A DNA stretch of 64,000 nt from the NCBI GenBank assembly GCA_051530055.1, contig CM121341.1, positions 4,690,784 to 4,754,783 of the forward strand, written 5' to 3'. The notes under the pieces are model-generated. The model did not search any database. It had not been told where the DNA came from and saw nothing but the letters and a program-made list of their open reading frames with translations. The position numbers were made by a program, and so were the translations under genes. Origin of the DNA: Neoechinorhynchus agilis. Taxonomy: Eukaryota > Animalia > Acanthocephala. Below, piece by piece: positions 19,791 to 49,900 of this stretch (position 1 is the first letter of the stretch; each line of letters begins with the position of its first letter).

Positions 19791-20030
19791 AATGTATTGA
19801 AGAAACGAAGACAATTTAAAACTCATTGTTTATGTCCGGTATTATTGCTACCGATCGATAATAAACGAAGTGCCATACGATGCTCACAGTCGCACGTTCC
19901 TCGTAGAGTTCCATTGTCACAAGTTCTTGAGATTTCAAAGCCGAAATTTAAGGTGTTCCTCATCGATCGATAATGCGATAAAAATAGTCTTACATGTCAG
20001 AGCGATCATCGAAGTCATGCGGGGAATTTG

Positions 20031-27250: not shown

Positions 27251-30200
27251 TTATTGTTCGTGTGCAACTTCATTGTTTACGTCATGTTCTGAATCAATGC
27301 GGCGATTTATTGTCGCAGAAAGATACGAGCGGTGTCACTTTATTGTTTTTCTGTAACTACAACACAATTTTCTTGCTTTGCCGTCAAGTGCATTGAATAT
27401 TCTTATTGTTCGTGTGCAACTTCATTGTTTACGTCATGTTCTGAATCAATGCGGCTATTTATTGTCGCAGAAAGATACGAGCGGTGTCACTTTATTGTTT
27501 TTCTGTAACTACAACACAATTTTCTTGCTTTGCCGTCAAGTGCATTTAATATTCTTATTGTTCGTGTGCAACTTCATTGTTTACGTCATGTTCTGAATCA
27601 ATGCGGCTATTTATTCCCGCAGATAGATACGAGCGGTGTCACTTTATTGTTTTGCGCTAACTAAAACACAATTTTCTTGCTTTGCCGTCAAGTGCATTGA
27701 ATATCCTTATTGTTCGTGTGCAACTTCATTGTTTACGTCATGTTCTGAATCAATGCGGCTATTTATTGTCGCAGATAGATACGAGCGGTGTCACTTTATT
27801 GTTTTTCTGTAACTACAACACAATTTTCTTTCTTTGCCGTCAAGTGCATTGAATATTCTTATTGTTCGTGTGCAACTTCATTGTTTACGTCATGTTCTGA
27901 ATCAATGCGGCGATTTATTGTCGCAGAAAGATACGAGCGGTGTCACTTTATTGTTTTTCTGTAACTACAACACAATTTTCTTGCTTTGCCGTCAAGTGCA
28001 TTTAATATTCTTATTGTTCGTGTGCAACTTCATTGTTTACGTCATGTTCTGAATCAATGCGGCTATTTATTCCCGCAGATAGATACGAGCGGTGTCACTT
28101 TATTGTTTTGCGCTAACTAAAACACAATTTTCTTGCTTTGCCGTCAAGTGCATTGAATATCCTTATTGTTCGTGTGCAACTTCATTGTTTACGTCATGTT
28201 CTGAATCAATGCGGCTATTTATTGTCGCAGATAGATACGGGCGGTGTCACTTTATTGTTTTTCTGTAACTACAACACAATTTTCTTTCATTGCCGTCAAG
28301 TGAATTGAATATTCTTATTGTTCGTGTGCAACTTCATTGTTTACGTCATGTTCTGAATCAATGCGGCTATTTATTCCCGCAGATAGATACGAGCGGTGTC
28401 ACTTTATTGTTTCTCTGTAACTACAACACAATTTTCTTGCTTTGCGGTCAAGTGCATTTAATATTCTTATTGTTTGTGGTCAACTTCATTGTTTACGTCA
28501 TGTTCTGAATCAATGCGGCGATTTATTGTCGCAGATAGATACGGGCGGTGTCACTTTATTGTTTCTCTGTAACTACAACACAATTTTCTTGCTTTGCGGT
28601 CAAGTGCATTTAATATTCTTATTGTTTGTGGTCAACTTCATTGTTTACGTCATGTTCTGAATCAATGCGGCTATTTATTCCCGCAGATAGATACGAGCGG
28701 TGTCACTTTATTGTTTTTCGCTAACTACAACACAATTTTCTTGCTTTGCCGTCAAGTGCATTGAATATCCTTATTGTTCGTGTGCAACTTCATTGTTTAC
28801 GTCATGTTCTGAATCAATGCGGCTATTTATTGTCGCAGAAAGATACGGGCGGTGTCACTTTATTGTTTTTCTGTAACTACAACACAATTTTCTTTCATTG
28901 CCGTCAAGTGAATTGAATATTCTTATTGTTCGTGTGCAACTTCATTGTTTACGTCATGTTCTGAATCAATGCGGCTATTTATTGTCGCAGATAGATACGA
29001 GCGGTGTCACTTTATTGTTTTTCTCTAACTACAACACAATTTTCTTGCTTTGCCGTCAAGTGCATTTAATATTCTTATTGTTCGTGTGCAACTTCATTGT
29101 TTACGTCATGTTCTGAATCAATGCGGCTATTTATTGTCGCAGATAGATACGGGCGGTGTCACTTTATTGTTTTTCTGTAACTACAACACAATTTTCTTGC
29201 TTTGCCGTCAAGTGCATTGAATATTCTTATTGTTCGTGTGCAACTTCATTGTTTGCGTCATGTTCTGAATCAATGCGGCTATTTATTCCCGCAGATAGAT
29301 ACGAGCGGTGTCACTTTATTGTTTCTCTGTAACTACAACACAATTTTCTTGCTTTGCGGTCAAGTGCATTTAATATTCTTATTGTTTGTTGCAACTTCAT
29401 TGTTTACGTCATGTTCTGAATCAATGCGGCTATTTATTCTCGCAGATAGATACGAGCGGTGTCACTTTATTGTTTCTCTGTAACTACAACACAATTTTCT
29501 TGCTTTGCGGTCAAGTGCATTTAATATTCTTATTGTTTGTGGTCAACTTCATTGTTTACGTCATGTTCTGAATCAATGCGGCGATTTATTGTCGCAGATA
29601 GATACGGGCGGTGTCACTTTATTGTTTCTCTGTAACTACAACACAATTTTCTTGCTTTGCCGTCAAGTGCATTTAATATTCTTATTGTTCGTGTTCAACT
29701 TCATTGTTTACGTCATGTTCTGAATCAATGCGGCGATTTATTGTCGCAGATAGATACGAGCGGTGTCACTTTATTGTTTCTCTGTAACTACAACACAATT
29801 TTCTTGCTTTGCGGTCAAGTGCATTTAATATTCTTATTGTTTGTGGTCAACTTCATTGTTTACGTCATGTTCTGAATCAATGCGGCTATTTATTCCCGCA
29901 GATAGATACGAGCGGTGTCACTTTATTGTTTTGCGCTAACTAAAACACAATTTTCTTGCTTTGCCGTCAAGTGCATTGAATATCCTTATTGTTCGTGTGC
30001 AACTTCATTGTTTACGTCATGTTCTGAATCAATGCGGCTATTTATTGTCGCAGAAAGATACGGGCGGTGTCACTTTATTGTTTTTCTGTAACTACAACAC
30101 AATTTTCTTGCTTTGCCGTCAAGTGCATTGAATATCCTTATTGTTCGTGTGCAACTTCATTGTTTACGTCATGTTCTGAATCAATGCGGCTATTTATTGT

Positions 30201-33200
30201 CGCAGAAAGATACGGGCGGTGTCACTTTATTGTTTTTCTGTAACTACAACACAATTTTCTTTCATTGCCGTCAAGTGCATTGAATATCCTTATTGTTCGT
30301 GTGCAACTTCATTGTTTACGTCATGTTCTGAATCAATGCGGCTATTTATTGTCGCAGAAAGATACGGGCGGTGTCACTTTATTGTTTTTCTGTAACTACA
30401 ACACAATTTTCTTTCATTGCCGTCAAGTGCATTGAATATTCTTATTGTTCGTGTGCAACTTCATTGTTTACGTCATGTTCTGAATCAATGCGGCGATTTA
30501 TTGTCGCAGATAGATACGGGCGGTGTCACTTTATTGTTTTTCTGTAACTACAACACAATTTTCTTGCTTTGCCGTCAAGTGCATTGAATATCCTTATTGT
30601 TCGTGTGCAACTTCATTGTTTACGTCATGTTCTGAATCAATGCGGCTATTTATTGTCGCAGAAAGATACGGGCGGTGTCACTTTATTGTTTTTCTGTAAC
30701 TACAACACAATTTTCTTTCATTGCCGTCAAGTGCATTGAATATTCTTATTGTTCGTGTGCAACTTCATTGTTTACGTCATGTTCTGAATCAATGCGGCGA
30801 TTTATTGTCGCAGAAAGATACGAGCGGTGTCACTTTATTGTTTTTCTGTAACTACAACACAATTTTCTTGCTTTGCCGTCAAGTGCATTTAATATTCTTA
30901 TTGTTCGTGTGCAACTTCATTGTTTACGTCATGTTCTGAATCAATGCGGCTATTTATTGTCGCAGAAAGATACGAGCGGTGTCACTTTATTGTTTTTATG
31001 TAACAACAACACAATTTTCTTGCTTTGCCGTCAATTGCATTTAAAATTCTTATTGTTCGTGTGCCACTTCATTGTTTACGTATGTTCTGAATCAATGCGG
31101 CTATTTATTCCCGCAGATAGATACGAGCGGTGTCACTTTATTGTTTTGCGCTAACTAAAACACAATTTTCTTGCTTTGCCGTCAAGTACATTGAATATCC
31201 TTATTGTTCGTGTGCAACTTCATTGTTTACGTCATGTTCTTAATCAATGCGGCTATTTATTCCCGCAGATAGATACGAGCGGTGTCACTTTATTGTTTTG
31301 CGCTAACTAAAACACAATTTTCTTGCTTTGCCGTCAAGTGCATTGAATATCCTTATTGTTCGTGTGCAACTTCATTGTTTACGTCATGTTCTGAATCAAT
31401 GCGGCTATTTATTGTCGCAGAAAGATACGGGCGGTGTCACTTTATTGTTTTTCTGTAACTACAACACAATTTTCTTTCATTGCCGTCAAGTGAATTGAAT
31501 ATTCTTATTGTTCGTGTGCAACTTCATTGTTTGCGTCATGTTCTGAATCAATGCGGCTATTTATTCCCGCAGATAGATACGAGCGGTGTCACTTTATTGT
31601 TTCTCTGTAACTACAACACAATTTTCTTGCTTTGCGGTCAAGTGCATTTAATATTCTTATTGTTTGTGGTCAACTTCATTGTTTACGTCATGTTCTGAAT
31701 CAATGCGGCGATTTATTGTCGCAGATAGATACGGGCGGTGTCACTTTATTGTTTCTCTGTAACTACAACACAATTTTCTTGCTTTGCCGTCAAGTGCATT
31801 GAATATTCTTATTGTTCGTGTGCAACTTCATTGTTTACGTCATGTTCTTAATCAATGCGGCTATTTATTCCCGCAGATAGATACGAGCGGTGTCACTTTA
31901 TTGTTTTTCGCTAACTAAAACACAATTTTCTTGCTTTGCCGTCAAGTGCATTGAATATCCTTATTGTTCGTGCGCAACTTCATTGTTTACGTCATGTTCT
32001 GAATCAATGCGGCTATTTATTGTCGCAGAAAGATACGGGCGGTGTCACTTTATTGTTTTTCTGTAACTACAACACAATTTTCTTTCATTGCCGTCAAGTG
32101 CATTGAATATTCTTATTGTTCGTGTGCAACTTCATTGTTTACGTCATGTTCTGAATCAATGCGGCTATTTATTGCCGCAGATAGATACGAGCGGTGTCAC
32201 TTTATTGTTTTTCGCTAACTACAACACAATTTTCTTGCTTTGCCGTCAAGTGCATTTAATATTCTTATTGTTCGTGTGCAACTTCATTGTTTACGTCATG
32301 TTCTGAATCAATGCGGCGATTTATTGTCGCAGAAAGATACGAGCGGTGTCACTTTATTGTTTCTCTGTAACTACAACACAATTTTCTTTCATTGCCGTCA
32401 AGTGCATTTAATATTCTTATTGTTTGTGGTCAACTTCATTGTTTACGTCATGTTCTGAATCAATGCGGCGATTTATTGTCGCAGAAAGATACGAGCGGTG
32501 TCACTTTATTGTTTTGCTGTAACTACAACACAATTTTTTTCATTGCCGTCAAGTGAATTGAATATTCTTATTGTTCGTGTGCAACTTCATTGTTTACGTC
32601 ATGTTCTGAATCAATGCGGCTATTTATTGTCGCAGATAGATACGAGCGGTGTCACTTTATTGTTTTTCTGTAACTACAACACAATTTTCTTTCATTGCCG
32701 TCAAGTGCATTTAATATTCTTATTGTTCGTGTGCAACTTCATTGTTTACGTCATGTTCTGAATCAATGCGGCGATTTATTGTCGCAGAAAGATACGAGCG
32801 GTGTCACTTTATTGTTTCTCTGTAACTACAACACAATTTTCTTTCATTGCCGTCAAGTGCATTTAATATTCTTATTGTTTGTGGTCAACTTCATTGTTTA
32901 CGTCATGTTCTGAATCAATGCGGCGATTTATTGTCGCAGATAGATACGGGCGGTGTCACTTTATTGTTTTTCTGTAACTACAACACAATTTTCTTTCATT
33001 GCCGTCAAGTGCATTGAATATTCTTATTGTTCGTGTGCAACTTCATTGTTTACGTCATGTTCTGAATCAATGCGGCTATTTATTCCCGCAGATAGATACG
33101 AGCGGTGTCACTTTATTGTTTTTCGCTAACTAAAACACAATTTTCTTGCTTTGCCGTCAAGTGCATTGAATATTCTTATTGTTCGTGTGCAACTTCATTG

Positions 33201-34737
33201 TTTACGTCATGTTCTGAATCAATGCGGCGATTTATTGTCGCAGAAAGATACGGGCGGTGTCACTTTATTGTTTTTCTGTAACTACAACACAATTTTCTTT
33301 CATTGCCGTCAAGTGCATTTAATATTCTTATTGTTCGTGTGCAACTTCATTGTTTACGTCATGTTCTGAATCAATGCGGCTATTTATTCCCGCAGATAGA
33401 TACGAGCGGTGTCACTTTATTGTTTTTCGCTAACTACAACACAATTTTCTTGCTTTGCCGTCAAGTGCATTGAATATTCTTATTGTTCGTGTGCAACTTC
33501 ATTGTTTACGTCATGTTCTGAATCAATGCGGCGATTTATTGTCGCAGAAAGATACGAGCGGTGTCACTTTATTGTTTTTCTGTAACTACAACACAATTTT
33601 CTTTCATTGCCGTAAAGTGCATTGAATATTCTTATTGTTCGTGTGCAACTTCATTGTTTACGTCATGTTCTGAATCAATGCGGCTATTTATTGTCGCAGA
33701 TAGATACGAGCGGTGTCACTTTATTGTTTTTCGCTAACTACAACACAATTTTCTTGCTTTGCCGTCGATTGCATTTAATATTCTTATTGTTCGTGTGCAA
33801 CTTCATTGTTTACGTCATGTTCTGAATCAATGCGGCTATTTATTGTCGCAGAAAGATACGGGCAGTGTCACTTTATTGTTTTTCGCTAACTACAACACAA
33901 TTTTCTTTCATTGCCGTCAAGTGAATTGAATATTTTTATTGTTCGTGTGCAACTTCATTGTTTACGTCATGTTCTGAATCAATGCGGCGATTTATTGTCG
34001 CAGATAGATACGAGCGGTGTCACTTTATTGTTTTTCGCTAACTACAACACAATTTTCTTACTTTGCCGTCAAGTGCATTTAATATTCTTATTGTTCGTGT
34101 GCAACTTCATTGTTTACGTCATGTTCTGAATCAATGCGGCTATTTATTGTCGCAGAAAGATACGGGCGGTGTCACTTTATTGTTTTTCGCTAACTACAAC
34201 ACAATTTTCTATCATTGCCGTCAAGTGCATTTAATATTCTTATTGTTCGTGCGCAACTTCATTGTTTACGTCATGTTCTGAATCAATGCGGCTATTTATT
34301 GTCGCAGATAGATACGAGCGGTGTCACTTTATTGTTTTTCGCTAACTACAACACAATTTTCTATCATTGCCGTCAAGTGCATTGAATATTCTTATTGTTT
34401 GTGGTCTACTTCATTGTTTACGTCATGTTCTGAATCAATGCGGCGATTTATTTTCGCAGATAGATACGAGCGGTGTCACTTTATTGTTTTTCTGTAACTA
34501 CAACACAATTTTCTATCATTGCCGTAAAGTGCATTGAATATTCTTATTGTTCGTGTACAACTTCATTGTTTACGTCATGTTCTGAATCAATGCGGCTATT
34601 TATTGTCGCAGAAAGATACGAGCAGTGTCACTTTATTGTTTTTCTGTAACTAAAACACAATTTTCTTGCTTTGCCGTCAAGTGCATTGAATATTCTTATT
34701 GTTTGTGGTCAACTTCATTGTTTACGTCATGTTCTGA
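27251..34737. repeat. 152-bp satellite, block 1 (about 49 units)
   Basis: Unit TTGCCGTCAAGTGCATTGAATATTCTTATTGTTCGTGTGCAACTTCATTGTTTACGTCATGTTCTGAATCAATGCGGCTATTTATTGTCGCAGATAGATACGAGCGGTGTCACTTTATTGTTTTTCGCTAACTACAACACAATTTTCTTGCT. The period is also visible in ORF-track spacings of 152, 304 and 456 bp. Confidence 0.99.
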
Positions 34738-34830
34738 TGATGTGCCATAGTTTTGTTCATCGGCTTTAAATCTGCTCCTTTTCTTTTTTCTTCTGTGACT
34801 GGTGAACAAGTTGCTTATTGTGCCGACACT
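34738..34830 (-). pseudogene. Short relic resembling the last degenerate repeats of copy A
   Basis: TCTGTGACTGGTGAACAAGTTGCTT resembles TCTGTGACTGGAACACCAGTTGCTT near 13797. AAATCTGCTC resembles the sequence near 13658. Confidence 0.5.
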
Positions 34831-35109
34831 GAAATGAATGTCTGTATGGTTGTAGCGGAAGGTTGATGTTCGCGACAAGTACGCATTTGAATTGTAATTT
34901 ATCTACTCAATTTTTAGATCGTATCTTAAAGGGGGAAAATGCGTTTTAAAGATTCGAATGAAGTTTATACAAATAGAGATAAGAAACATCAAAAAGCTAA
35001 ATATTTTAAACTTCAATTTGCAAAATTTATAGTATGAATCTTTAGTCTTGCACAGTAGACATGCAACATTGTATTGGTTCGCCAGCGGAAAAATAACAAT
35101 GATTTTTAT

Positions 35110-38100
35110 TTAGTCGTCGCTTAATATCTGGTTTAACAAATTATCTTCATCGGAGTCTTCATCGCTGTCAAATTGACTCTCCTCTGGATTTCCGTTTGTA
35201 TTATTAGTCGCGTCATTTTCCTGGTCCTCCTCGGTGTTATCGTTTTTCCTCGGACTGTCAGCGATCCCCAACGCTGCTCGTATCGCGTCCTCTAGTTGAA
35301 GAGTTTCAGCATCCTTTGGTTTTCGTATTACCTCCGCCGGTGGTTCGGATGGTGGTAATTCCTCACGAACGGATTGGGGTGTCATCTCGCCACCTTCAGA
35401 ATAATCTTCTTCTTCGGATTGTTCTCCTTCTGGAGTGCAAGGGCGAAAAAGTATGTTTTCTAGGAACATGTTAACAGTTTGATTAGCATCAACGCTCATA
35501 TAGCTTTCGGCCGGACTGGTAGCCGAAGCGCTTGACGATAGATTAAGTTCCTCTATCGATCGAGGATATTCTAAAATGTACTGCGCGAGCGTTGCCTCGT
35601 CGAACTGAGATGATCCGTTAAATTGATCCTTTGTTTCAACTCCAACTGGAATGGGTATATGTTGCTCAGATTCAAATTGTTCATTGATCTTGTGATATTG
35701 TTGGTGGTGTTCAGTTTGGGGCTCCTGCTGGTTTATCGGTCCAAAGTTAACATCGGGAGAAAAATTGAAGTTATCACGATCGTTGTCTGGCGCTTCAAAT
35801 GAAAAATAGTGCTCGTGTTCGACGTTTGGCCGACGATATCTATCTAAATCTTCATTGGCAATCTCATATCTATCAGCCGACAATGTATTAAATATAGTCC
35901 CCCTTTGCTCATCGTGTAGATTTACGGTGTCATCCAGCTGCAGTTCAGCGGCACTTCGAGTTTCATTCTCTGCTCTAATCTGATTATTTTCTAATCGTTC
36001 TCCGGTCAGATGAGATTTCTGCTCGTTTAGCAACCGGAAATTTTCTTGGTAATCCTCATCATTAAGCCCAACTTTATCCGAAAAATTACGCTGGTTGCTT
36101 TCGTGTGCCCCCTTGATTTCAGCTTCAATATTTGGTTCAGGACACATCTTTTGCTTTTTAGGTGGATGACATTCCGAAACGTCGTGTGTCCTTTTAGTGC
36201 TTTGTTTATCGGAAAAAATTTGGTGGCTCCGTATTGATTTTTGTTCACACATCTGCTCATTCGACTTCGCCGTTTCATCAGTTACCTTATTCGAGGACAG
36301 ATCTGCTCCTTGATAGTTTTGTACGCCCGTCATATTTTCTCTTTGCGTACAATTAATTTTTTGCATTTTGCTTAATTCCTTATAATTATCGGTGCCTTCA
36401 TATTGCCTTTTCATTGCTGTTATTGAATTTTGATTGAATCGTTTTTGGCCACTCGCCGATCGATCATCGCCATCCTTATTGATCATTGAAGCACAGTTCA
36501 TTGAATATCCTTGCTGTTCGCGTGGAACTTCATTCTTAACCTCAGTGTTCTGATTTGGCGCCGCTATTTCGTGTTGTTGATAAAAATGCGCCGTCGTAAT
36601 GTTTTGTGGATCGGTGACTGGAGCATAAGCCGCTTGCTGGCCTTGCAAGTGCATTGAATATCCTTGCTGCTCGCGTTGATCTTCATTGTTAACCTCAGTG
36701 TTCAGATTTTGCGCCGCTATTTCGGTTTGTTGATAGAAACCTACCGTCGCCATGTTTTGTGGTTCGCTGATTGGAGCACAAGCCGCTTGCTGGCCCTGCA
36801 AGTTTATTGAATATCCTTGCTGTTCGCGTGGATCTTCATTGTTTACCCCAGTGTTCGGATTTGGCGCCGTTATTTCGGTTTGTTGATAGAAACCCGCTGC
36901 CGTCATGTTTTGTGGATTGGTTACTGGAGCACGAGCCGCTTGCTGATCCTGCAAGTACATTGAATATCCTTGTTGTTCGCGTTGAACTTCATTGTTTACC
37001 CAAGTGTTCGGATTTGGAGCCGCTATTTCGGTTTCTTGATAGAAACCCACCGTCGCCATGTTTTGTGGTTCGGTGATTGGAGCGCAAGCCGCTTGCTGAT
37101 CCTGCAAGTGCATTGAATATCCTTGCTGTTCGCGTGGATCTTCATTGTTAACCTCAGTGTTCGGATGAGGTGCCGCAATTTCGTATTGTTGGTGGAAACC
37201 CACCGTCGCCATGTTTTGTAGTTCGGTGATTGGAGCACAAGCCGCTTGCTGATCCTGCAAGTGCATTGAATATCCTTGTTGTTCGCGTGGATCTTCATTG
37301 TTAACCTCAGTGTTCGGATTTGGCGCCGTTATTTCGGTTTGTTGATAGAAACCCGCTGCCGTCATGTTTTGTGGATTGGTTACTGGAGCACAAGCCGCTT
37401 GCTGATCCTGCAAGTGCATTGAATATCCTTGCTGTTCGCGTGGAACTTCATTGTTTACCCCAGTGTTCGGATTTGGCGCCGCTATTTCGGTTTGTTGATA
37501 GAAACCCACCGTCGCCATGTTTTGTGGTTCGCTGATTGGAGCACAAGCCGCTTGCTGATCCTGCAAGTGCATTGAATATCCTTGTTGTTCGCGTTGATCT
37601 TCATTGTTAACCTCAGTGTTCTGATTTGGCGCCGCTATTTCGTGTTGTTGATAGAAACCCACCGTCGCCATGTTTTGTGGTTCAGTGATTGGAGCACAAG
37701 CCGCTTGCTCATCCTGCAAGTGCATTGAATATCCTTGTTGTTCGCGTTGATCTTCATTGTTAACCTCAGTGTTCTGATTTGGCGCCGCTATTTCGTGTTG
37801 TTGATAGAAACCCACCGTCGCCATGTTTTGTGGTTCAGTGATTGGAGCACAAGCCGCTTGCTCATCCTGCAAGTGCATTGAATATCCTTGTTGTTCGCGT
37901 TGATCTTCATTGTTAACCTCAGTGTTCTGATTTGGCGCCGCTATTTCGTGTTGTTGATAGAAACCCACCGTCGCCATGTTTTGTGGTTCAGTGATTGGAG
38001 CACAAGCCGCTTGCTCATCCTGCAAGTGCATTGAATATCCTTGTTGTTCGCGTTGATCTTCATTGTTAACCTCAGTGTTCTGATTTGGCGCCGCTATTTC

Positions 38101-41100
38101 GTGTTGTTGATAGAAACCCACCGTCGCCATGTTTTGTGGTTCAGTGATTGGAGCACAAGCCGCTTGCTCATCCTGCAAGTGCATTGAATATCCTTGTTGT
38201 TCGCGTTGATCTTCATTGTTTACCTCAGTGTTCTGATTTGGCGCCGCTATTTCGTGTTGTTGATAGAAACCCACCGTCGCCATGTTTTGTGGTTCAGTGA
38301 TTGGAGCACAAGCCGCTTGCTGATCCTGCAAGTGCATTGAATATCCTTGTTGTTCGCGTTGAACTTCATTGTTTACCCCAGTGTTCGGATTTTGCGCCGC
38401 TATTTCGTTTTGTTGATAGAAGCCCACCGTCGCCATGTTTTTTGGTTCGGTAATTGGAGCACAAGCCGCTTGCTGATCCTGCAAGTGCATTGAATATCCT
38501 TGCTGTTCGCGATGATCTTCATTGTTAACCTCAATGTTCTGATTTGGCGCCGCTGTTTCGTTTTGTTGATAAAAACGTGCTGTTGCCATGTTTTGGTGTT
38601 CGGTGATTCGAGCACATACCGCTTGTTCGGCCGGTAAGTTTATTGAATATCCTCGCTGTTCGCGTGGAACTTCATTGTTTACCTCAGTATTCTGATTGGG
38701 TGCCACTATTTGGCGTTTTTGATAGAAACTCGCCGCCGTCGTGGTTTGTTGATCGGTGAATTGAGCACAAACCGCTTGTTGGGCTTGCAAATGCATCGAA
38801 TATCCTTGCTGTTCGCGTGGAACTTCATTGTTTACCCCAATGTTCTGATTGGGTTCCGCTATTTTGTGTTGTTGATAGAAACCCGCTGCCGTCATGTTTT
38901 GTGGATTGGTTACTGGAGCATAAGCCGCTTGCTGGCCCCGCGAGTTCATTGAATATCCTTCTTGTTCGCTTGGAACTCTATTGTTTACGTCAGTGTTCCG
39001 ATGTGGCCCCGCTATTTGGTGTTGTTGATGGATACCCGCTGTCGCCATGCTTTGTTGATCGGTGGCTGGAGCGCAAGGCATTTGTTTGGTTTGCAAGTGC
39101 ATTGAATATCCTTGTTGTTCGCGTTGAACTCTATTGTTTGCGTCAGCGTTCTGATTAGGTGCCACTACTTGGTTTTGTTGATAGAAACCCGCTGCTGCCA
39201 TGTTTTGTTGATCGGATGCTGGAGTGCAAGGCATTTGTTGGCCCTGCAAGTTCATTGAATATCCTTGTTGTTCGCGTTGAACTCTACTGTTTACGTCCGG
39301 GTTCGAATTGGGTGCCATTACTTGGTATTGTTGATAGAAACCCGCTGCCGCCATGGTTTGTTGATCGGTTAATGGAGCACAAGTCGCTTGCTGGCCCTGC
39401 AAGTTCATTGAATATCCTTGTTGTTCGCGTGGAACTCTATTGTTTACGTCAGCGTTCTGATTAGGTGCCGCTATTTGGTGTTGTTGATGGAAACCCGCTG
39501 CCGCCATGTTTTGTTGATCGTTGAATGGAGCACAAACTCCTTGCTGGCCCTGCAAGTTCATTGAATATCCTTGTTGTTCACGTGAAACTCTATTGTTTAC
39601 GTCAGCGTTCTGATTAGGTGCCGCTATTTGGTGTTGTTGATGGAAACCCGCTGCCGCCATGTTTTGTTGATCGTTGAATGGAGCACAAACTCCTTGCTGG
39701 CCCTGCAAGTTCATTGAATATCCTTGTTGTTCACGTGAAACTCTATTGTTTACGTCAGCGTTCTGATTAGGTGCCGCTATTTGGTGTTGTTGATGGAAAC
39801 CCGCTGCCGCCATGTTTTGTTGATCGTTGAATGGAGCACAAACTCCTTGCTGGCCCTGCAAGTTCATTGAATATCCTTGTTGTTCACGTGAAACTCTATT
39901 GTTTACGTCAGCGTTCTGATTAGGTGCCGCTATTTGGTGTTGTTGATGGAAACCCGCTGCCGCCATGTTTTGTTGATCGTTGAATGGAGCACAAACTCCT
40001 TGCTGGCCCTGCAAGTTCATTGAATATCCTTGTTGTTCACGTGAAACTCTATTGTTTACGTCAGCGTTCTGATTAGGTGCCGCTATTTGGTGTTGAGGAT
40101 AGTAACCCGCGGTTACCATGTTTTGTTGATCGGTGAATGGAGCACAAACTCCTTGCTGGCCCTGCAAGTTCATTGAATATCCTTGTTTTTCGCGTTGAAC
40201 TCTATTGTTTACGTCCGGGTTCTGATTGGGTGCCGCTATTTGGTGTTGTTGATTGAAACCCGCTGCCGCCATGTTTTGTTGATCGGTGAATGGAGCACAA
40301 GCCGCTTGCTGGCCCTGCAAGTGCATTGAATATCCTTGTTTTTCGCGTAGAGCTCTATTGTTTACGTCAGCGCTCTGATTATGTGCCACTACTTGGTGTT
40401 GTTGATGGAAACCCGCTGCCGCCATGCTTTGTTGATCGGTGAATGGAGCACAAGCCGCTTGCTGGCCCTGCAAGTGCATTGAATATCCTTGTTGTTCGCG
40501 TGCAACTCTATTGTTTACGTCAGCGTTCTGATTAGGTGCCACTACTTGGTTTTGTTGGTAGAAACCCGCTGCTGCCATGTTTTGTTGATCGGTGAATGGA
40601 GCACAAACCGCTTGTTGGCCTTGCAAGTGCATTGTAAATCCTTGTTGTTCGCGTGAAACTGTATTGTTTACGTCAGCGTTCTGGTTAGGTGCCGCTATTT
40701 GGTGTTGAGGATTGTAACTCGCGGTTGCCATGTTTTGTTGATCGGTGAATGGAGCACAAGCCGCTTGCTGGCCCTGCAAGGGCATTGAATATCCTTGTTG
40801 TTCGCGTGAAAATCTATTGTTTACGTCGGCGTTCTGATTAGGTGCCACTATTTGGTGTTGAGGATAGTAGCCCGCGGTTGCCATGTTTTGTCGATCGGTA
40901 CCACTAATCATTCGAACAGGATTTGCCATCAATGTAGGATGTATGTTTTGGCCACTATTTCCCAAATTTAATCGTTCTGTTGGCGGTTGTTGTTCTTGCT
41001 GCCATTGTTGCTGATATTGAGCAGGCTGTTGTTGGTTGTTCATCTGAGTTCCGTAGTTATGCACTCCCGATGGGTCTTGGGCATTTTGCAATGTTCCAAT

Positions 41101-41721
41101 ATTTTGGAGAGCTGGGTTATGGTAAATGTTTTGCGGATTGCCGTTTCCTTTAATAAAATTCTGAGCTGTCATCATGGGATTTGGCTGTTGCATTTGCTGC
41201 GTGCCGTAAAAGTGACCCGTATTGCCGGCCAATTGTTGGATATTTTGGTTTTGGAAGGCATTTGCATTGGTTATCGGACCCAAATTTTGTTGGAAATGTC
41301 CAAGCACATTCGGGTTGTAGAAATTTCCTTGAGCATACGGTGCCATCACAGCGGCTCCATTTCCACCCGCTGCAACATCATTTGGTACGGCACCATCGTA
41401 GGTAAGATTTTTAGCTTGAAATTCGTCCCTGTTCCTTAAACGACCATCCTTGTTGCCTCCATTGATGGCCCAGTGCATTCCATTTGGGCCCTGGGATACT
41501 CTTACCAGTGTAAACTTGTTGCTCGCAGATAATTTATGACGAACATAGTTTTGCCAATTTTTTACTCCCTCTTCGTCAGTTATTGCGGCAAAATATGGAT
41601 AATTCTGTTTAAAATAATCGTAGATCTTTTGTAGTGGCAGTGTGCGATTAGGAGCGTTGCTGATCGCCAACCTGGCTATTTCGGAAATGCTTATATCTCC
41701 CCACGCATTTTGTCTCGGCAT
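35110..41721 (-). CDS. FOXO-like: Divergent FoxO-type forkhead protein, copy B, intact 2203 aa, about 29 Q/N-rich repeats, acidic C-terminus
   Basis: Single uninterrupted ORF. N-terminal forkhead domain RQNAWGDISISEIARLAI...WQNYVRHKLS...HW. Confidence 0.92.
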   Translation of the reverse strand: MPRQNAWGDISISEIARLAISNAPNRTLPLQKIYDYFKQNYPYFAAITDEEGVKNWQNYVRHKLSASNKFTLVRVSQGPNGMHWAINGGNKDGRLRNRDEFQAKNLTYDGAVPNDVAAGGNGAAVMAPYAQGNFYNPNVLGHFQQNLGPITNANAFQNQNIQQLAGNTGHFYGTQQMQQPNPMMTAQNFIKGNGNPQNIYHNPALQNIGTLQNAQDPSGVHNYGTQMNNQQQPAQYQQQWQQEQQPPTERLNLGNSGQNIHPTLMANPVRMISGTDRQNMATAGYYPQHQIVAPNQNADVNNRFSREQQGYSMPLQGQQAACAPFTDQQNMATASYNPQHQIAAPNQNADVNNTVSREQQGFTMHLQGQQAVCAPFTDQQNMAAAGFYQQNQVVAPNQNADVNNRVAREQQGYSMHLQGQQAACAPFTDQQSMAAAGFHQQHQVVAHNQSADVNNRALREKQGYSMHLQGQQAACAPFTDQQNMAAAGFNQQHQIAAPNQNPDVNNRVQREKQGYSMNLQGQQGVCAPFTDQQNMVTAGYYPQHQIAAPNQNADVNNRVSREQQGYSMNLQGQQGVCAPFNDQQNMAAAGFHQQHQIAAPNQNADVNNRVSREQQGYSMNLQGQQGVCAPFNDQQNMAAAGFHQQHQIAAPNQNADVNNRVSREQQGYSMNLQGQQGVCAPFNDQQNMAAAGFHQQHQIAAPNQNADVNNRVSREQQGYSMNLQGQQGVCAPFNDQQNMAAAGFHQQHQIAAPNQNADVNNRVPREQQGYSMNLQGQQATCAPLTDQQTMAAAGFYQQYQVMAPNSNPDVNSRVQREQQGYSMNLQGQQMPCTPASDQQNMAAAGFYQQNQVVAPNQNADANNRVQREQQGYSMHLQTKQMPCAPATDQQSMATAGIHQQHQIAGPHRNTDVNNRVPSEQEGYSMNSRGQQAAYAPVTNPQNMTAAGFYQQHKIAEPNQNIGVNNEVPREQQGYSMHLQAQQAVCAQFTDQQTTTAASFYQKRQIVAPNQNTEVNNEVPREQRGYSINLPAEQAVCARITEHQNMATARFYQQNETAAPNQNIEVNNEDHREQQGYSMHLQDQQAACAPITEPKNMATVGFYQQNEIAAQNPNTGVNNEVQREQQGYSMHLQDQQAACAPITEPQNMATVGFYQQHEIAAPNQNTEVNNEDQREQQGYSMHLQDEQAACAPITEPQNMATVGFYQQHEIAAPNQNTEVNNEDQREQQGYSMHLQDEQAACAPITEPQNMATVGFYQQHEIAAPNQNTEVNNEDQREQQGYSMHLQDEQAACAPITEPQNMATVGFYQQHEIAAPNQNTEVNNEDQREQQGYSMHLQDEQAACAPITEPQNMATVGFYQQHEIAAPNQNTEVNNEDQREQQGYSMHLQDQQAACAPISEPQNMATVGFYQQTEIAAPNPNTGVNNEVPREQQGYSMHLQDQQAACAPVTNPQNMTAAGFYQQTEITAPNPNTEVNNEDPREQQGYSMHLQDQQAACAPITELQNMATVGFHQQYEIAAPHPNTEVNNEDPREQQGYSMHLQDQQAACAPITEPQNMATVGFYQETEIAAPNPNTWVNNEVQREQQGYSMYLQDQQAARAPVTNPQNMTAAGFYQQTEITAPNPNTGVNNEDPREQQGYSINLQGQQAACAPISEPQNMATVGFYQQTEIAAQNLNTEVNNEDQREQQGYSMHLQGQQAAYAPVTDPQNITTAHFYQQHEIAAPNQNTEVKNEVPREQQGYSMNCASMINKDGDDRSASGQKRFNQNSITAMKRQYEGTDNYKELSKMQKINCTQRENMTGVQNYQGADLSSNKVTDETAKSNEQMCEQKSIRSHQIFSDKQSTKRTHDVSECHPPKKQKMCPEPNIEAEIKGAHESNQRNFSDKVGLNDEDYQENFRLLNEQKSHLTGERLENNQIRAENETRSAAELQLDDTVNLHDEQRGTIFNTLSADRYEIANEDLDRYRRPNVEHEHYFSFEAPDNDRDNFNFSPDVNFGPINQQEPQTEHHQQYHKINEQFESEQHIPIPVGVETKDQFNGSSQFDEATLAQYILEYPRSIEELNLSSSASATSPAESYMSVDANQTVNMFLENILFRPCTPEGEQSEEEDYSEGGEMTPQSVREELPPSEPPAEVIRKPKDAETLQLEDAIRAALGIADSPRKNDNTEEDQENDATNNTNGNPEESQFDSDEDSDEDNLLNQILSDD
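36490..40880 (-). repeat. Coding tandem repeat (153-bp unit) in copy B
   Basis: Same unit family as in copy A, with runs of near-identical units at about 37550-38250 and 39450-40050. Confidence 0.97.
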
Positions 41722-41930
41722 ATTGTTTTCAAGAATTTGGAGCTTATAATGGTTTGAAAGAGATAAAAGAAGATTTCAACCGTTTGTGAGAGTTTCTAAA
41801 GGATTAAAATACGCTCATCTTTGGTCGTTTTGACTAATGTATTCAGGTGATGTAGCAAACAGTTTTTGGATAAACTATTTACCATTCAAACTCCATATTT
41901 GTCAATAACTCTGCGCTTTCAGCCCCAATA
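41722..41930 (-). promoter_or_regulatory. Conserved upstream block of copy B
   Basis: Homologous to 19572-19790. CAGGTG 41844-41849, GCAAACA 41855-41861, TATTTAC 41876-41882. Confidence 0.5.
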
Positions 41931-42024
41931 GTACACTAAGTTTTGTCGTTGTTTTCAAAACGCCAATAAAATTCAAAACATAAACCGATTTTAGATATTA
42001 CTATCGAGTCGCTGTATTGTATTA

Positions 42025-43957
42025 TTACACTCAATAAGCCATCATCACGTATTTTGGAATTCGGATCATAAGGTCCAGAATATTGGATTGAGGATTGTTG
42101 TGCAGAGTTTTCCTATCTATAGTTTATGTCGTCTTTTATTTAAATTTACAATTATGCATCTTAGTCTCTATACTTAAAGTAAACATACTTTCTCGATTGT
42201 TTCTTTAATTTGCGTTTCAATCACTAAAATTAAGAAGAGTCTAGGTTAGAATTGTTTTTAGAAAGTAGATCACATTCAAAAGATTTGGTATGGTTAATTT
42301 GAGTAATAAGAAAAATATAGATGCATTGGATGGGGACGGATCCGTAAACCAGTTAAACACGAATATTCTAATATAGAATTCGGTATTTGGCGTTCATATT
42401 CGGTGTACTGATCCACAAGGCGACTCGGAAATAAATCGGTGACTTATCGCTAATGAGTTGTAATGATGCCTAAACAACGACAAGAATGGAATTACTTTGC
42501 TAATAGCAAAAACTTTCAAACACACAATAAATTTGATTCCACAAATGTTATTAATAAATCGTTTTATTTCAGGGAACATCAGGTATCTATTGAAACTTGT
42601 AAGTTTTGGGTGTTCCATCTTTGCAGCTACAAAACGTTAGCTGTTGATTGTCGTTTTCCGCTCTCTAGCTTTTGTATTAGTTGAGTTGGCTTTGGTCGGT
42701 TAATTTATAGTTGTTTTCCGCTCTTTCCTCTGAATCATTTCGCATTTGGCCGATTAAGCGCTGGAGACGAAGGTAGAGATTTTTGCGAGGAATTGAAGGA
42801 TGGAAAGTGTTGGGACGATGAGTGTTATAAGTGTAAGTAAAAGGATAAATGTGTGGTAGAAATTGAAGAGGCGGAAGAGAATGAAGGTGTTTTGAGTGCT
42901 TTTGAGATTTGAGAGAGGTGTTCTTCTACGAGTTTGGGGGAGCAGATTAGAGTGAACCTCCATTGTGAAATGTATTAAGTATTTTGGAAAAAGGTTAGAA
43001 GGAAAATTGCAGAAGGTTAGAAGAGCGTAGGTGAGCGTTGGTAGGATCACACGGACATATAAAAGTACTTAAGGTCTTTGGATGATAATCCGAGGAGTCG
43101 GAGGCGTTTAAGAAGATAGAGCTTAATGGATCCCTTGTGCAACAAAATTGATATGTGCTTCTTCTATAGATTTTTCTGAAAATAAAGACCAAGTATACGA
43201 ACAGAGGAGACACGATTGATAGGAAAAGGAAAAAGTGGCTGATCGGAAGGACTATTTGAGATTCAGGGGACGATTTCAAAGCACTTCGTTAAGTTAAGGG
43301 TAAAACATTTAGGGGAGCAAAATTCTTGAACGTGAGAAATCTCGTTAGGAGTAATTGAGAGTGAGACGGAGGATACCGGTACATCCGTAATGATTATAAG
43401 ATCACCCGCATACAAGACGTATTTAGAATAAAAAGAGAATGAAATAAGATCGGTTAGGAAAATGTTGAAAGGAATGGGGAAGAGAACAGTCCGTTCGAGA
43501 ACTCCTTTGTTGATTGCTAAGGTATTCGAGACGATGCTGCCTATTTTGGTAAATTGTAATCGATTGTTTAGAAAGGAATTAAACCATTTGATTTGCCAGG
43601 CGACAAAAATAAATTTAGAGCATGTATCAAGGAGAAGATTTTGATCAACGGAATCAAAAGCTTTATGAATGTCAATTTGGATGAGTCGAGAGATAAATAA
43701 AGGTTTTGCGTCGAGATAATGAAGAACGCGTCGGTACAGAAGCCGGGCCGGTAACCGAATTGAATGGATGAAATTTTTCGATTGAAGATTGGCAGAAGGT
43801 GTGCTTTAAAGCATCTCTCTAAGATTTTAGAGAAGGAATCTAAGTTAGAGATGGGTCGAAAACTTGAGGTGGATATAAGTTCACCTGCTTTCGGGAGCAG
43901 AGTTACCCGATCTCTTTTTGGGCAATTATGGAAGATTCCGGTCTTGAAACTTTGGTT
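42025..43957. repeat. Segmental duplication, copy 2, including a truncated copy of the LINE (about 42670-43957)
   Basis: Matches 20031-21986 and breaks off at ACTTTGGTT, where the satellite resumes. Confidence 0.95.
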
Positions 43958-46900
43958 TCTGAATCAATACGGCTATTCGATGACGCAGATAGATACGAGC
44001 GGTGTCACTTTATTGTTTTTCGCGGACTACAACACAATTTTCTTGCTTTGCCGTCAAGTGCATTTAATATTCTTATTGTTCGTGTGCAACTTCATTGTTT
44101 ACGTCATGTTCTGAATCAATGCGGCTATTTATTGTCGCAGATAGATACGAGCGGTGTCACTTTATTGTTTTTCTGCGACTACAACACAATTTTCTATCAT
44201 TGCCGTCGAGTGCATTTAATATTCTTATTGTTCGTGTGCAACTTCATTGTTTACGTCATGTTCTGAATCAATGCGGCGATTTATTGTCGCAGAAAGATAC
44301 GAGCGGTGTCACTTTATTGTTTTTCTGTAACTACAACACAATTTTCTTGCTTTGCCGTCAAGTGCATTTAATATTCTTATTGTTCGTGTGCAACTTCATT
44401 GTTTACGTCATGTTCTGAATCAATGCGGCGATTTATTGTCGCAGAAAGATACGAGCGGTGTCACTTTATTGTTTTTCGCGGACTACAACACAATTTTCTT
44501 GCTTTGCCGTCAAGTGCATTGAATATTCTTATTGTTCGTGTGCAACTTCATTGTTTACGTCATGTTCTGAATCAATGCGGCTATTTATTGTCGCAGATAG
44601 ATACGAGCGGTGTCACTTTATTGTTTTTCGCTAACTACAACACAATTTTCTTGCTTTGCCGTCAAGTGCATTTAATATTCTTATTGTTCGTGTGCAACTT
44701 CATTGTTTACGTCATGTTCTGAATCAATGCGGCGATTTATTGTCGCAGAAAGATACGAGCGGTGTCACTTTATTGTTTTTCGCTGACTACAACACAATTT
44801 TCTTGCTTTGCCGTCAAGTGCATTTAATATTCTTATTGTTCGTGTGCAACTTCATTGTTTACGTCATGTTCTGAATCAATGCGGCTATTTATTGTCGCAG
44901 ATAGATACGAGCGGTGTCACTTTATTGTTTTTCTCTAACTACAACACAATTTTCTTTCATTGCCGTCGAGTGCATTTAATATTCTTATTGTTCGTGTGCA
45001 ACTTCATTGTTTACGTCATGTTCTGAATCAATGCGGCGATTTATTGTCGCAGAAAGATACGAGCGGTGTCACTTTATTGTTTTTCGCTAACTACAACACA
45101 ATTTTCTTGCTTTGCCGTCAAGTGCATTGAATATTCTTATTGTTCGTGTGCAACTTCATTGTTTACGTCACGTTCTGAATCAATGCGGCGATTTATTGTC
45201 GCAGATAGATACGAGCGGTGTCACTTTATTGTTTTTCGCGGACTACAACACAATTTTCTTGCTTTGCCGTCAAGTGCATTTAATATTCTTATTGTTCGTG
45301 TGCAACTTCATTGTTTACGTCATGTTCTGAATCAATGCGGCTATTTATTGTCGCAGATAGATACGAGCGGTGTCACTTTATTGTTTTTCTGTAACTACAA
45401 CACAATTTTCTATCATTGCCGTCGAGTGCATTTAATATTCTTATTGTTCGTGTGCAACTTCATTGTTTACGTCATGTTCTGAATCAATGCGGCGATTTAT
45501 TGTCGCAGATAGATACGAGCGGTGTCACTTTATTGTTTTTCGCGGTCTACAACACAATTTTCTTGCTTTGCCGTCAAGTGCATTGAATATTCTTATTGTT
45601 CGTGTGCAACTTCATTGTTTACGTCATGTTCTGAATCAATGCGGCGATTTATTGTCGCAGAAAGATACGAGCGGTGTCACTTTATTGTTTTTCGCTGACT
45701 ACAACACAATTTTCTTGCTTTGCCGTCGAGTGCATTTAATATTCTTATTGTTCGTGTGCAACTTCATTGTTTACGTCATGTTCTGAATCAATGCGGCGAT
45801 TTATTGTCGCAGAAAGATACGAGCGGTGTCACTTTATTGTTTCTCTGTAACTACAACACAATTTTCTTGCTTTGCCGTAAGTGCATTGAATATTCTTATT
45901 GTTCGTGTGCAACTTCATTGTTTACGTCATGTTCTGAATCAATGCGGCTATTTATTGTCGCAGAAAGATACGAGCGGTGTCACTTTATTGTTTCTTTGTA
46001 ACTACAACACAATTTTCTTGCTTTGCCGTCAATTGCATTTAAAATTCTTATTGTTCGTGTGCCACTTCATTGTTTACGTCATGTTCTGAATCAATGCGGC
46101 TTGTTATTGTCGCAGAAAGATACGAGCGGTGTCACTTTATTGTTTTCTGTAACTACAACACAATTTTCTATCATTGCCGTAAAGTGCATTGAATATTCTT
46201 ATTGTTCGTGTGCAACTTCATTGTTTACGTCATGTTCTGAATCAATGCGGCGATTTATTGTCGCAGATAGATACGAGCGGTGTCACTTTATTGTTTTTCG
46301 CTAACTACAACACAATTTTCTTGCTTTGCCGTCAAGTGCATTGAATATTCTTATTGTTCGTGTGCAACTTCATTGTTTACGTCATGTTCTGAATCAATGC
46401 GGCGATTTATTGTCGCAGATAGATACGAGCGGTGTCACTTTATTGTTTTTCGCGGACTACAACACAATTTTCTTGCTTTGCCGTAAAGTGCATTTAATAT
46501 TCTTATTGTTCGTGCTCAACTTCATTGTTTACGTCATGTTCTGAATCAATGCGGCTATTTATTGTCGCAGATAGATACGAGCGGTGTCACTTTATTGTTT
46601 TTCGCTAACTACAACACAATTTTCTTGCTTTGCCGTCAAGTGCATTGAATATTCTTATTGTTCGTGTGCAACTTCATTGTTTACGTCATGTTCTGAATCA
46701 ATGCGGCTATTTATTCCCGCAGATAGATACGAGCGGTGTCACTTTATTGTTTTTCGCTAACTACAACACAATTTTCTTGCTTTGCCGTCGAGTGCATTTA
46801 ATATTCTTATTGTTCGTGTGCAACTTCATTGTTTACGTCATGTTCTGAATCAATGCGGCTATTTATTGTCGCAGAAAGATACGAGCGGTGTCACTTTATT

Positions 46901-49900
46901 GTTTTTCTGTAACTACAACACAATTTTCTATCATTGCCGTAAAGTGCATTGAATATTCTTATTGTTCGTGTGCAACTTCATTGTTTACGTCACGTTCTGA
47001 ATCAATGCGGCGATTTATTGTCGCAGATAGATACGAGCGGTGTCACTTTATTGTTTTTCGCGGACTACAATACAATTTTCTTGCTTTGCCGTCATGTGCA
47101 TTGAATATTCTTATTGTTCGTGTGCAACTTCATTGTTTACGTCATGTTCTGAATCAATGCGGCGATTTATTGTCGCAGATAGATACGAGCGGTGTCACTT
47201 TATTGTTTTTCGCTAACTACAACACAATTTTCTTGCTTTGCCGTCAAGTGCATTGAATATTCTTATTGTTCTTGTGCAACTTCATTGTTTACGTCATGTT
47301 CTGAATCAATGCGGCGATTTATTGTCGCAGAAAGATACGAGCGGTGTCACTTTATTGTTTTTCGCGGACTACAACACAATTTTCTTGCTTTGCCGTCAAG
47401 TGCATTTAATATTCTTATTGTTCGTGTGCAACTTCATTGTTTACGTCATGTTCTGAATCAATGCGGCTATTTATTGTCGCAGATAGATACGAGCGGTGTC
47501 ACTTTATTGTTTTTCGCTAACTACAACACAATTTTCTTGCTTTGCCGTCAAGTGCATTTAATATTCTTATTGTTCGTGTGCAACTTCATTGTTTACGTCA
47601 TGTTCTGAATCAATGCGGCTATTTATTGTCGCAGAAAGATACGAGCGGTGTCACTTTATTGTTTTTCTGTAACTACAACACAATTTTCTATCATTGCCGT
47701 CAAGTGCATTGAATATTCTTATTGTTCGTGTGCAACTTCATTGTTTACGTCATGTTCTGAATCAATGCGGCTATTTATTGTCGCAGATAGATACGAGCGG
47801 TGTCACTTTATTGTTTTTCGCTAACTACAACACAATTTTCTTGCTTTGCCGTCAATTGCATTTAATATTCTTATTGTTCGTGTGCAACTTCATTGTTTAC
47901 GTCATGTTCTGAATCAATGCGGCGATTTATTGTCGCAGATAGATACGAGCGGTGTCACTTTATTGTTTTTCGCGGACTACAACACAATTTTCTTGCTTTG
48001 CCGTCAAGTGCATTGAATATTCTTATTGTTCGTGTGCAACTTCATTGTTTACGTCATGTTCTGAATCAATGCGGCATTTATTGTCGCAGAGATACGAGCG
48101 GTGTCACTTTATTGTTTTTCGCGACACCAATTTTCTTGCTTTGCCGTCAAGTGCATTAATATTCTAATTGTTCGTGTGCAACTATTGTTTACGTCACGTT
48201 CTGAATCAATGCGGCGATTTATTGTCGCAGATAGATACGAGCGGTGTCACTTTATTGTTTTTCGCGGACTACAATACAATTTTCTTGCTTTGCCGTCAAG
48301 TGCATTTAATATTCTTATTGTTCGTGCTCAACTTCATTGTTTACGTCATGTTCTGAATCAATGCGGCTATTTATTGTCGCAGATAGATACGAGCGGTGTC
48401 ACTTTATTGTTTTTCTGTAACTACAACACAATTTTCTATCATTGCCGTAAAGTGCATTGAATATTCTTATTGTTCGTGTGCAACTTCATTGTTTACGTCA
48501 TGTTCTGAATCAATGCGGCTATTTATTCCCGCAGATAGATACGAGCGGTGTCACTTTATTGTTTTTCGCTAACTACAACACAATTTTCTTGCTTTGCCGT
48601 CAAGTGCATTTAATATTCTTATTGTTCGTGTGCAACTTCATTGTTTACGTCATGTTCTGAATCAATGCGGCTATTTATTGTCGCAGAAAGATACGAGCGG
48701 TGTCACTTTATTGTTTTTCTGTAACTACAACACAATTTTCTTTCATTGCCGTCAAGTGCATTGAATATTCTTATTGTTCGTGTGCAACTTCATTGTTTAC
48801 GTCATGTTCTGAATCAATGCGGCGATTTATTGTCGCAGATAGATACGAGCGGTGTCACTTTATTGTTTTTCGCTAACTACAACACAATTTTCTTGCTTTG
48901 CCGTCAAGTGCATTTAATATTCTTATTGTTCGTGTGCAACTTCATTGTTTACGTCATGTTCTGAATCAATGCGGCTATTTATTGTCGCAGAAAGATACGA
49001 GCGGTGTCACTTTATTGTTTTTCTGTAACTACAACACAATTTTCTTTCATTGCCGTCAAGTGCATTGAATATTCTTATTGTTCGTGTGCAACTTCATTGT
49101 TTACGTCATGTTCTGAATCAATGCGGCTATTTATTGTCGCAGAAAGATACGAGCGGTGTCACTTTATTGTTTTTCTGTAACTACAACACAATTTTCTTTC
49201 ATTGCCGTCAAGTGCATTGAATATTCTTATTGTTCGTGTGCAACTTCATTGTTTACGTCATGTTCTGAATCAATGCGGCGATTTATTGTCGCAGATAGAT
49301 ACGAGCGGTGTCACTTTATTGTTTTTCGCGGACTACAACACAATTTTCTTGCTTTGCCGTCAAGTGCATTGAATATTCTTATTGTTCGTGTGCAACTTCA
49401 TTGTTTACGTCATGTTCTGAATCAATGCGGCGATTTATTGTCGCAGATAGATACGAGCGGTGTCACTTTATTGTTTTTCGCTAACTACAACACAATTTTC
49501 TTGCTTTGCCGTCAAGTGCATTGAATATTCTTATTGTTCGTGTGCAACTTCATTGTTTACGTCATGTTCTGAATCAATGCTTTATTGTTATATGTCACTT
49601 TATTTTTTCGCTGACTACAACACAATTTTCTTGCTTTGCCGTCAAGTGCATTGAATATTCTTATTGTTCGTGTGCAACTTCATTGTTTACGTCATGTTCT
49701 GAATCAATGCGGCTATTTATTGTCGCAGATAGATACGAGCGGTGTCACTTTATTGTTTTTCGCTAACTACAACACAATTTTCTTGCTTTGCCGTCAATTG
49801 CATTTAATATTCTTATTGTTCGTGTGCAACTTCATTGTTTACGTCATGTTCTGAATCAATGCGGCGATTTATTGTCGCAGATAGATACGAGCGGTGTCAC

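Follow-up and report, generated by a model that had tools for sequence, protein, structure and literature searches.

The window analysed here is a 64,000-nucleotide stretch of the acanthocephalan Neoechinorhynchus agilis (CM121341.1, positions 4,690,784-4,754,783, assembly GCA_051530055.1), in which 9.2 kb of DNA carrying an intact FoxO-like gene, FoxO-B, separates two register-matched blocks of one 152-bp satellite. Reading this locus as an interrupted array is reasonable, given a single derived satellite on either side, the shared register and the lack of transposon ends. We propose, with a probability of roughly 45%, that the 9.2-kb segment (the cassette) was copied into the array by homology- or microhomology-primed break repair or by replicative template switching, without transposition.

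Junctions and register of the two satellite blocks

The left block (B1, 27233-34731), as delimited by Tandem Repeats Finder (TRF), anchor spacing and a table of variants, contains 49 monomers of 152 bp that are 94% alike. Its 49 anchors are spaced at 152 bp and the next anchor is the TTCTGA at 34732-34737; by direct reading and anchor spacing, the block terminates as ...CATGTTCTGA at 34737 and is followed by TGATGTGCC. The right block (B2, 43957-60569; 109 monomers of 152 bp) opens as TTCTGAATCAAT, with TTCTGA at 43957-43962, immediately after the sequence ...GAAACTTTGGT of a long interspersed nuclear element (LINE). Both boundaries fall at positions 1-6 of the 152-bp unit, with the 6-bp TTCTGA on either side, and joining 34731 to 43957 yields a perfect monomer. 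The in-register junctions described in the initial annotation are thus borne out, with the start of B2 read as 43957. Its estimate that such a register would arise by chance in a few percent of cases also holds: if the ends of the two arrays were placed independently, they would overlap by 0-8 bp with a frequency of ~9/152, or roughly 6%, and by exactly 6 bp with a frequency of ~0.7%.

The absence of terminal repeats and of a transposase was confirmed by a search for inverted pairs, by self-comparison and by the content of open reading frames (ORFs). No terminal inverted repeats were found, and no inverted pair involves 34738 or 43956; self-comparison showed no direct terminal repeats of the insert; and the insert has no transposase or integrase of its own, its sole long ORFs being FoxO-B and degenerate fragments of reverse transcriptase (RT). 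Helitron-like ends were not seen when the cassette boundaries were read by eye, and target-site duplications flanking the LINE pieces alone were sought and not found. The microhomology amounts to 6 nt (TTCTGA) plus an in-phase unit at the left junction and to 1 nt (T) at the right junction, where the LINE piece, relative to its counterpart beside the paralogue A described below, is cut exactly at the satellite with a 1-nt overlap. Five substitutions are clustered within 15 nt (43969-43983) in the first 27 nt of B2. Three of the five occur in no other of the 158 monomers, the remainder of this first monomer shows nothing unusual, and singletons are otherwise rare in the arrays. This cluster is compatible with error-prone repair synthesis.

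An assembly artefact at one satellite boundary could be suspected in a region so rich in satellite DNA, the more so as an unplaced 30-kb contig overlaps it. However, both junctions join unique DNA to satellite and never satellite to satellite, the left junction is independently present on the unplaced contig, and the LINE piece of B differs from that of A by six substitutions and one indel, so it is no misplaced copy of A; we consider an artefact very improbable. ORFs spanning the junctions and one at the window end are not on record in public assemblies, protein searches with the N-terminus of B, a GNAT gene and the LINE ORF returned only GCA_051530055.1 or nothing, and a literature search by accession gave no match. 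As a structural claim, the interrupted array depends on a single assembly, the only one on record for the species, and on a coincidence of phase at the level of a few percent.

The degenerate unit at the left junction

Between the left TTCTGA and the 3' flank of FoxO-B lie 168 bp (34738-34905), hereafter the relic, which comprise a degenerate repeat unit up to ~34880 and 29 bp of unassigned sequence. With a profile of the coding-type unit, nhmmer aligns 34792-34876 (relic positions 55-139) to unit positions 64-149 (E=1.1e-4), offset by 3-4 nt from perfect B1 phase. The first 15 nt of the relic (TTCTGATGATGTGCC) agree at 12 of 15 positions with the start of the coding-type consensus unit, as counted from the alignment, and a 38-bp core (34782-34819) matches a degenerate edge unit of gene A (13786-13823) at 82% by blastn. 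Identity over the whole relic is 54-60%, whether the 152-type consensus, the 153-type consensus or the edge unit of gene A is taken for comparison. Of the diagnostic sites, 18 agree with the 153-type, 13 with the 152-type and 10 with neither, which makes the relic an old unit; heavily degenerate, it continues B1 in phase. Identity falls abruptly from ~95% to ~57% at the switch from B1 to the relic, and the homology between A and B starts sharply only at 34906 (11819 in A).

These observations change how the short direct repeat is to be read. The last hexamer of B1 (34732-34737) is equally the first hexamer of the following degenerate unit, so while the initial annotation correctly read a junction at 34737, it took this as the end of the block, and one more degenerate unit follows in phase. 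Likewise, TTCTGA does stand on both sides of the cassette, but a target-site duplication is not shown, since the left copy doubles as the conserved start of the relic's own in-phase unit. The left TTCTGA also occurs, with a 1-bp deletion, on the unplaced contig, where it has no right-hand partner.

The capture of extrachromosomal circular DNA (eccDNA) or of a free fragment by end joining at a 6-bp staggered break would yield in-register junctions, a 6-bp repeat and an insert free of transposon features. However, the fragment would have to start by chance at position 1 or 7 of a homologous unit (roughly 5-6%), and neither a circle junction nor a donor is known. The eccDNA re-integration put forward in the initial annotation found no specific support, and capture of either kind seems to us hardly probable.

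Origin of the satellite and relationship of its blocks

The 152-bp consensus is colinear with the 153-bp coding repeat of A and B, with 72% identity and a net length difference of 1 bp. Directly left of B1 lies a minus-strand relic of the C-terminal tail of a third FoxO-like paralogue, C (26926-27232; tblastn and blastn). The tails of A and B match it over 26974-27232 by tblastn, and blastn aligns 26974-27113 with the A tail (12067-12208, 82%) and 27100-27179 with the B tail (35937-36023, 83%). The adjoining 27175-27245 is a partial unit of the coding type, 94-97% identical to units of A (blastn), and at the left edge of B1, right after the tail relic, this coding type switches in phase to the 152-bp type. 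Given the colinear unit and the in-phase switch beside the tail relic, the satellite is the expanded and decayed 153-bp (51-aa) coding repeat of a truncated paralogue C. Long ORFs inside the arrays are limited to about 140 amino acids (aa). The tail relic is restricted to the far left end of the satellite, and no N-terminal or promoter remnant of C was found at the right end of B2, where the array breaks off at unit position 108 and unrelated DNA follows (60569/60570).

The two blocks have diverged in their variants. Each carries private variants of its own at high frequency, namely 42G, 63C, 115C and 125T in B1, which are absent or rare in B2, and 68G/69G, 77T and 151C in B2. Right at the join, the final monomer of B1 is strongly of the B1 type and the one opening B2 is of the B2 type, the best matches of windows spanning the junction are worse than typical, and B1 and B2 have no common colinear order of monomers. 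The only hint of continuity across the join comes from the variants 88A/89T/91A, which within B1 are limited to monomers 45-47; the gradient of variants toward the junction is weak and not decisive. The once-continuous array proposed in the initial annotation therefore keeps its support from the phase and the restored monomer, but gains none from variants or from blocks of several monomers across the join: nothing apart from phase demonstrates former continuity. Independent homogenisation of B1 and B2 after a split would explain their differences.

The DNA right of B2 (60570-64000) is unrelated to the satellite. On the minus strand, beside the end of B2, 60570-63000 holds a C2H2-like zinc-finger stretch with weak Pfam hits only. 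To the eye, the sequence from 60570 onward looks like the 5' region of a retroelement, the motif preceding the RT of an element lacking long terminal repeats (non-LTR) being cut at the junction. We considered this DNA as the missing 5' half of the LINE of B and rejected it, as the two have no nucleotide similarity.

Content of the cassette and comparison with paralogue A

The content that had been ascribed to the cassette, namely the relic, the 3' flank, an intact FoxO-B gene with a forkhead domain, the promoter and the LINE piece, was recovered in full. FoxO-B is an intact single ORF of 2203 aa on the minus strand (35110-41721). Its N-terminus with the forkhead domain (40909-41721; Pfam PF00250, 2e-14) has FOXO3, FOXO4 and FOXO1 as its closest solved relatives in the PDB (E ~1e-13), other Fox classes scoring 1e-8 or weaker, and it contains the NAWG motif. 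The domain is followed by ~29 Q-rich coding repeats of 153 bp (51 aa; 36495-40899) and a long, acidic C-terminal tail (35110-36494), and the label "intact FoxO-B" is a fair one. On the same strand lie the 3' flank (34906-35109, delimited by blastn alignment with A), the upstream region (41722-42021) and the LINE piece (42022-43956), which is the 3' part of a degenerate non-LTR element cut off within the RT region.

Paralogue A (11974-19571, minus strand), also FoxO-like, has its 153-bp repeats at 13833-18525 according to TRF and the ORF listing, followed upstream by a promoter, a 248-bp spacer and a degenerate LINE on the minus strand (20028 to ~22118). It is split into four ORFs (11974-14271, 14181-17279, 17321-18502 and 18597-19571), reflecting either a pseudogene or errors in the repeat region. 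The homology between A and B spans 11819-21986 and 34906-43957, the counterpart of the 3' flank in A being 11819-11973, and its strength differs greatly between segments. The LINE pieces (20031-21986 vs. 42025-43956) are 99.7% identical, with six substitutions and one 23-bp indel in 1956 bp, and this identity holds to the last base before the satellite. By contrast, the promoter and N-terminus of A and B are 74-99% identical per 100-bp window, with 74-87% over 41722-41929 upstream of B, and the C-terminal tails align over the last 38 aa only and are otherwise almost unalignable. A 92-bp spacer (41930-42021) is found in B only, A and the unplaced contig having an unrelated 248-bp spacer instead. 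Judged by this segment-wise mosaic of identities, one recent copy of A is excluded as the source of the cassette, and the pattern calls for either gene conversion between paralogues or a donor not seen here. The near-identity of the LINE pieces suggests recent gene conversion or re-copying between A and B that was limited to the LINE. Downstream of A, a 93-bp copy (11714-11806, 88%) of part of the A tail (12394-12486) abuts 11819; A and B thus have a common left boundary to which different gene fragments are attached.

The LINE piece lies on the strand of the gene, upstream of FoxO-B, and is 5'-truncated. The LINE of A runs at least 132 bp further 5' (to ~22118), which makes the B copy the truncated one, and the RVT_1 match in A falls on an ORF (21597-22118) that spans the point of truncation in B. 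Such an arrangement raises the possibility of LINE 3' transduction, in which a read-through transcript started in the LINE would have been reverse-transcribed at a nick in the satellite and truncated at its 5' end, with TTCTGA as the target-site duplication. The sense orientation and upstream position of the truncated LINE, the order LINE-promoter-gene shared by A, B and the unplaced contig with different truncations (at least 2100, 1935 and 420 bp, respectively), the single uninterrupted ORF of the gene and the short flanking repeat would all fit. Against it, the 3' end of the insert bears no tail of the poly(A), simple-repeat or element-specific kind (34738 onward reads TGATGTGCCATAG..., with no plus-strand run of T), and a likely AATAAA, found by reading the sequence, overlaps the FoxO-B stop codon at ~35105, ~340 bp before the cassette ends. 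Moreover, the LINE 3' end has no A-tail, the RT frame is degenerate, and a single RNA copy would not be expected to show such a mosaic of identities to A. We regard this route as quite improbable.

A second copy on an unplaced contig

A second copy of the gene, found through the protein cluster of the N-terminal ORF of A, lies on the unplaced 30-kb contig JBMGUZ010000032.1 of the same assembly (L002) and encodes KAL7667561.1 (1507 aa). In the orientation of the window, L002 has at least 9.6 kb of the 152-bp array, which ends in the junction already described for the window, here TTCTG-TGATGTGCC and thus one base shorter. Beyond it come the relic, the 3' flank and a tail of the B type, ~99.4% identical to the window over 2.2 kb, and two monomers flanking the junction are shared at about this level as well. 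The gene has 15 coding repeats only, its N-terminus and promoter are a mosaic of A and B with the A-type spacer, and the LINE extends for only 420 bp, beyond which there is unique DNA with a TMEM208 gene and an 88-bp satellite. In the array, the nearest relative of 48 of the 62 monomers is found in B2 alone; the 3.2 kb at its far end match the right end of B2 (57374-60569) at 99.0% identity and are followed by 6 kb of B2-type monomers, and the last two monomers match B1_47 and B1_48.

A third locus, L003 (CM121341.1, 9,714,876-9,735,510), lies 5 Mb from the window on the same chromosome and carries no more of the gene than its first 590 bp (KAL7676019.1, 198 aa) beside TMEM208, followed by a retroelement. 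L002 equals L003 at 100% over 3.9 kb and then switches abruptly to B-like sequence, so that the status of L002 is doubtful: it may be a real haplotype, a paralogous locus or structural variant, or a chimeric contig. The DNA beyond the breakpoint of L003 was considered as a counterpart of 60570-64000 in the window and rejected, the sequences being unrelated. The 88-bp satellite beside TMEM208 (~45 copies) spans 2599-6705 in L002 and 2757-6705 in L003, and a 136-bp repeat is found at the start of L003 (1-783).

The copy on L002 bears directly on whether the locus arose by duplication of a larger unit. In such a scenario, an ancestral unit comprising the C tail relic, the satellite, an edge unit, a FoxO gene, its promoter and the LINE would have been duplicated, with the shared phase of B1 and B2 as a coincidence. 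The boundary at 34737 would be the natural in-phase edge of a homogenised array, 43956/43957 would be either the joint of the duplication (LINE +1935 to some monomer) or the result of a later unequal exchange, and B2 would belong to a following unit that, on this haplotype, has lost its gene copy at the 60569 cut. The succession in L002 of the B2-end block, B2-type monomers, B1_47/B1_48, the junction, the relic and the gene is the continuation of B2 that this scenario predicts; the relic extends B1 in phase, as old edge units of an array would; B2 is cut off at unit position 108, where unrelated DNA begins; and a separate donor locus becomes unnecessary. On the other hand, the phase coincidence of roughly 6% is required, the monomer order of B1 and B2 is not colinear, L002 may be chimeric given its identity to L003 and the abrupt switch, and unequal crossing-over of B2 with B1 following an insertion could equally have produced the arrangement of L002. 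Unit duplication is a real possibility, though we would place the odds against it.

Proposed mechanism

In the mechanism that we favour, the 3' end of a broken or stalled array, ...CATG(TTCTGA), would have primed on the homologous degenerate unit beside a donor FoxO gene. Synthesis would have copied the gene and then its promoter and gone on into the LINE upstream, and the new end would then have been rejoined to the other side of the same break via the 1-nt microhomology (T). TTCTGA would be common repeat-unit sequence that served as the primer, with no duplication by a staggered cut. Later gene conversion among the paralogues could have produced the mosaic cassette, for example the LINE that is 99.7% like that of A, and each sub-array could subsequently have homogenised its own variants. 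One homology-primed event would account for the register together with the in-phase relic. The register, the relic in phase, the microhomologies, the missing transposon ends and the coding origin of the satellite are observed directly; that the direction was insertion and not duplication, by what mechanism, and that a donor existed is what we infer from them.

Several observations weigh against copying into the array. The register was spotted a posteriori, and its chance probability is roughly 6%. The private variants of B1 and B2 stay distinct right up to the junction, and a block of several monomers bridging the B1-B2 join was sought and not found. No donor with the same end points was identified among the copies compared (A and L002, the latter with only 420 bp of LINE), and A, which has no relic, differs by 8-30% along most of the cassette. 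In L002, the array on the 3' side of the gene is of the B2 type, and there is no 152-bp satellite upstream of the gene. This arrangement is what a duplicated array-gene unit predicts, and the copying model needs a later unequal exchange between B2 and B1 to explain it.

A broader version of the copying model holds that a functional FoxO paralogue was copied with its promoter, by priming on the repeat, into a satellite derived from another paralogue, and that the arrays now duplicate or move the gene, L002 being the second copy; this extension we hold to be doubtful. If confirmed, the locus would provide a dated, sequence-level example of a 51-aa coding repeat decaying to a 152-bp satellite after gene truncation, of a whole gene with its promoter placed in that satellite without a transposon, and of satellite arrays then mediating further gene duplication. 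Should copying and recombination between arrays both have occurred, the birth of a satellite from a gene would have supplied a landing pad and a copy-number engine for its own family. The locus also documents a lineage-specific, repeat-rich expansion of FoxO genes in an acanthocephalan.

Other features of the window

A Gypsy-like pol region with protease, RT, RNase H and integrase ORFs occupies 49-2846, and short tandem repeats with lengths of 141 bp and 326 bp come after it (2999-3264 and 3800-4625). Between the LINE of A and the C tail relic are an intronless GNAT acetyltransferase gene on the plus strand (23954-24502) and an ORF of 283 aa without an assigned family on the minus strand (25124-25975), each of which is single-copy in the searched records.

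Comparison with known systems

FoxO-B resembles members of the FoxO subfamily in its forkhead domain, which has the NAWG motif and is nearest to FOXO1/3/4, and differs from them in its ~29 tandem Q-rich repeats of 51 aa and its long acidic tail. A protein search found no close relative of FoxO-B outside this assembly.

In humans, microhomology, templated insertions and a return to the same site are marks of replicative insertion events (PMC5120786). The locus is similar to templated insertions, as produced by fork stalling and template switching (FoSTeS), microhomology-mediated break-induced replication (MMBIR) or synthesis-dependent strand annealing (SDSA) with end joining, in that a kilobase-scale segment appears to have been copied with junction microhomologies of 6 and 1 nt, the new end returned to the same site, transposon ends are absent and substitutions are clustered beside one junction. 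It differs in that no donor copy was identified, the left "microhomology" lies within a whole homologous unit, and gene conversion would have reshaped the insert. Segmental duplication by nonallelic homologous recombination (NAHR) likewise has parallels here: the gene is flanked by direct repeats of 7.5 and 16.6 kb, and the array of L002, beside the second gene copy, is B2-like at one end and B1-like at the other. NAHR alone is insufficient because the junction at 43956/43957, from LINE to satellite, is non-homologous.

Two transposon-related systems also share features with the locus. In LINE 3' transduction, as known from human L1, a 5'-truncated sense LINE carries along downstream host DNA and is bounded by a short flanking repeat. 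The cassette similarly has a sense-oriented, 5'-truncated LINE at one end, host DNA downstream of it and a short flanking repeat, but it has no A-tail, ends past the likely poly(A) signal, and would carry ~7.3 kb including a promoter and a gene. Transposons inserted into satellite arrays leave in-register flanks and target-site duplications. Here, too, the array phase is kept across the insert and a short direct repeat is present, but terminal repeats, an integrase and a transposase are all missing from the insert. Overall, the locus works like a templated duplicative insertion or a segmental duplication in satellite DNA and belongs to no transposon class. Its less usual aspects are the demonstrable birth of the satellite from the coding repeat of a paralogue and the presence of an intact member of the same gene family inside it.

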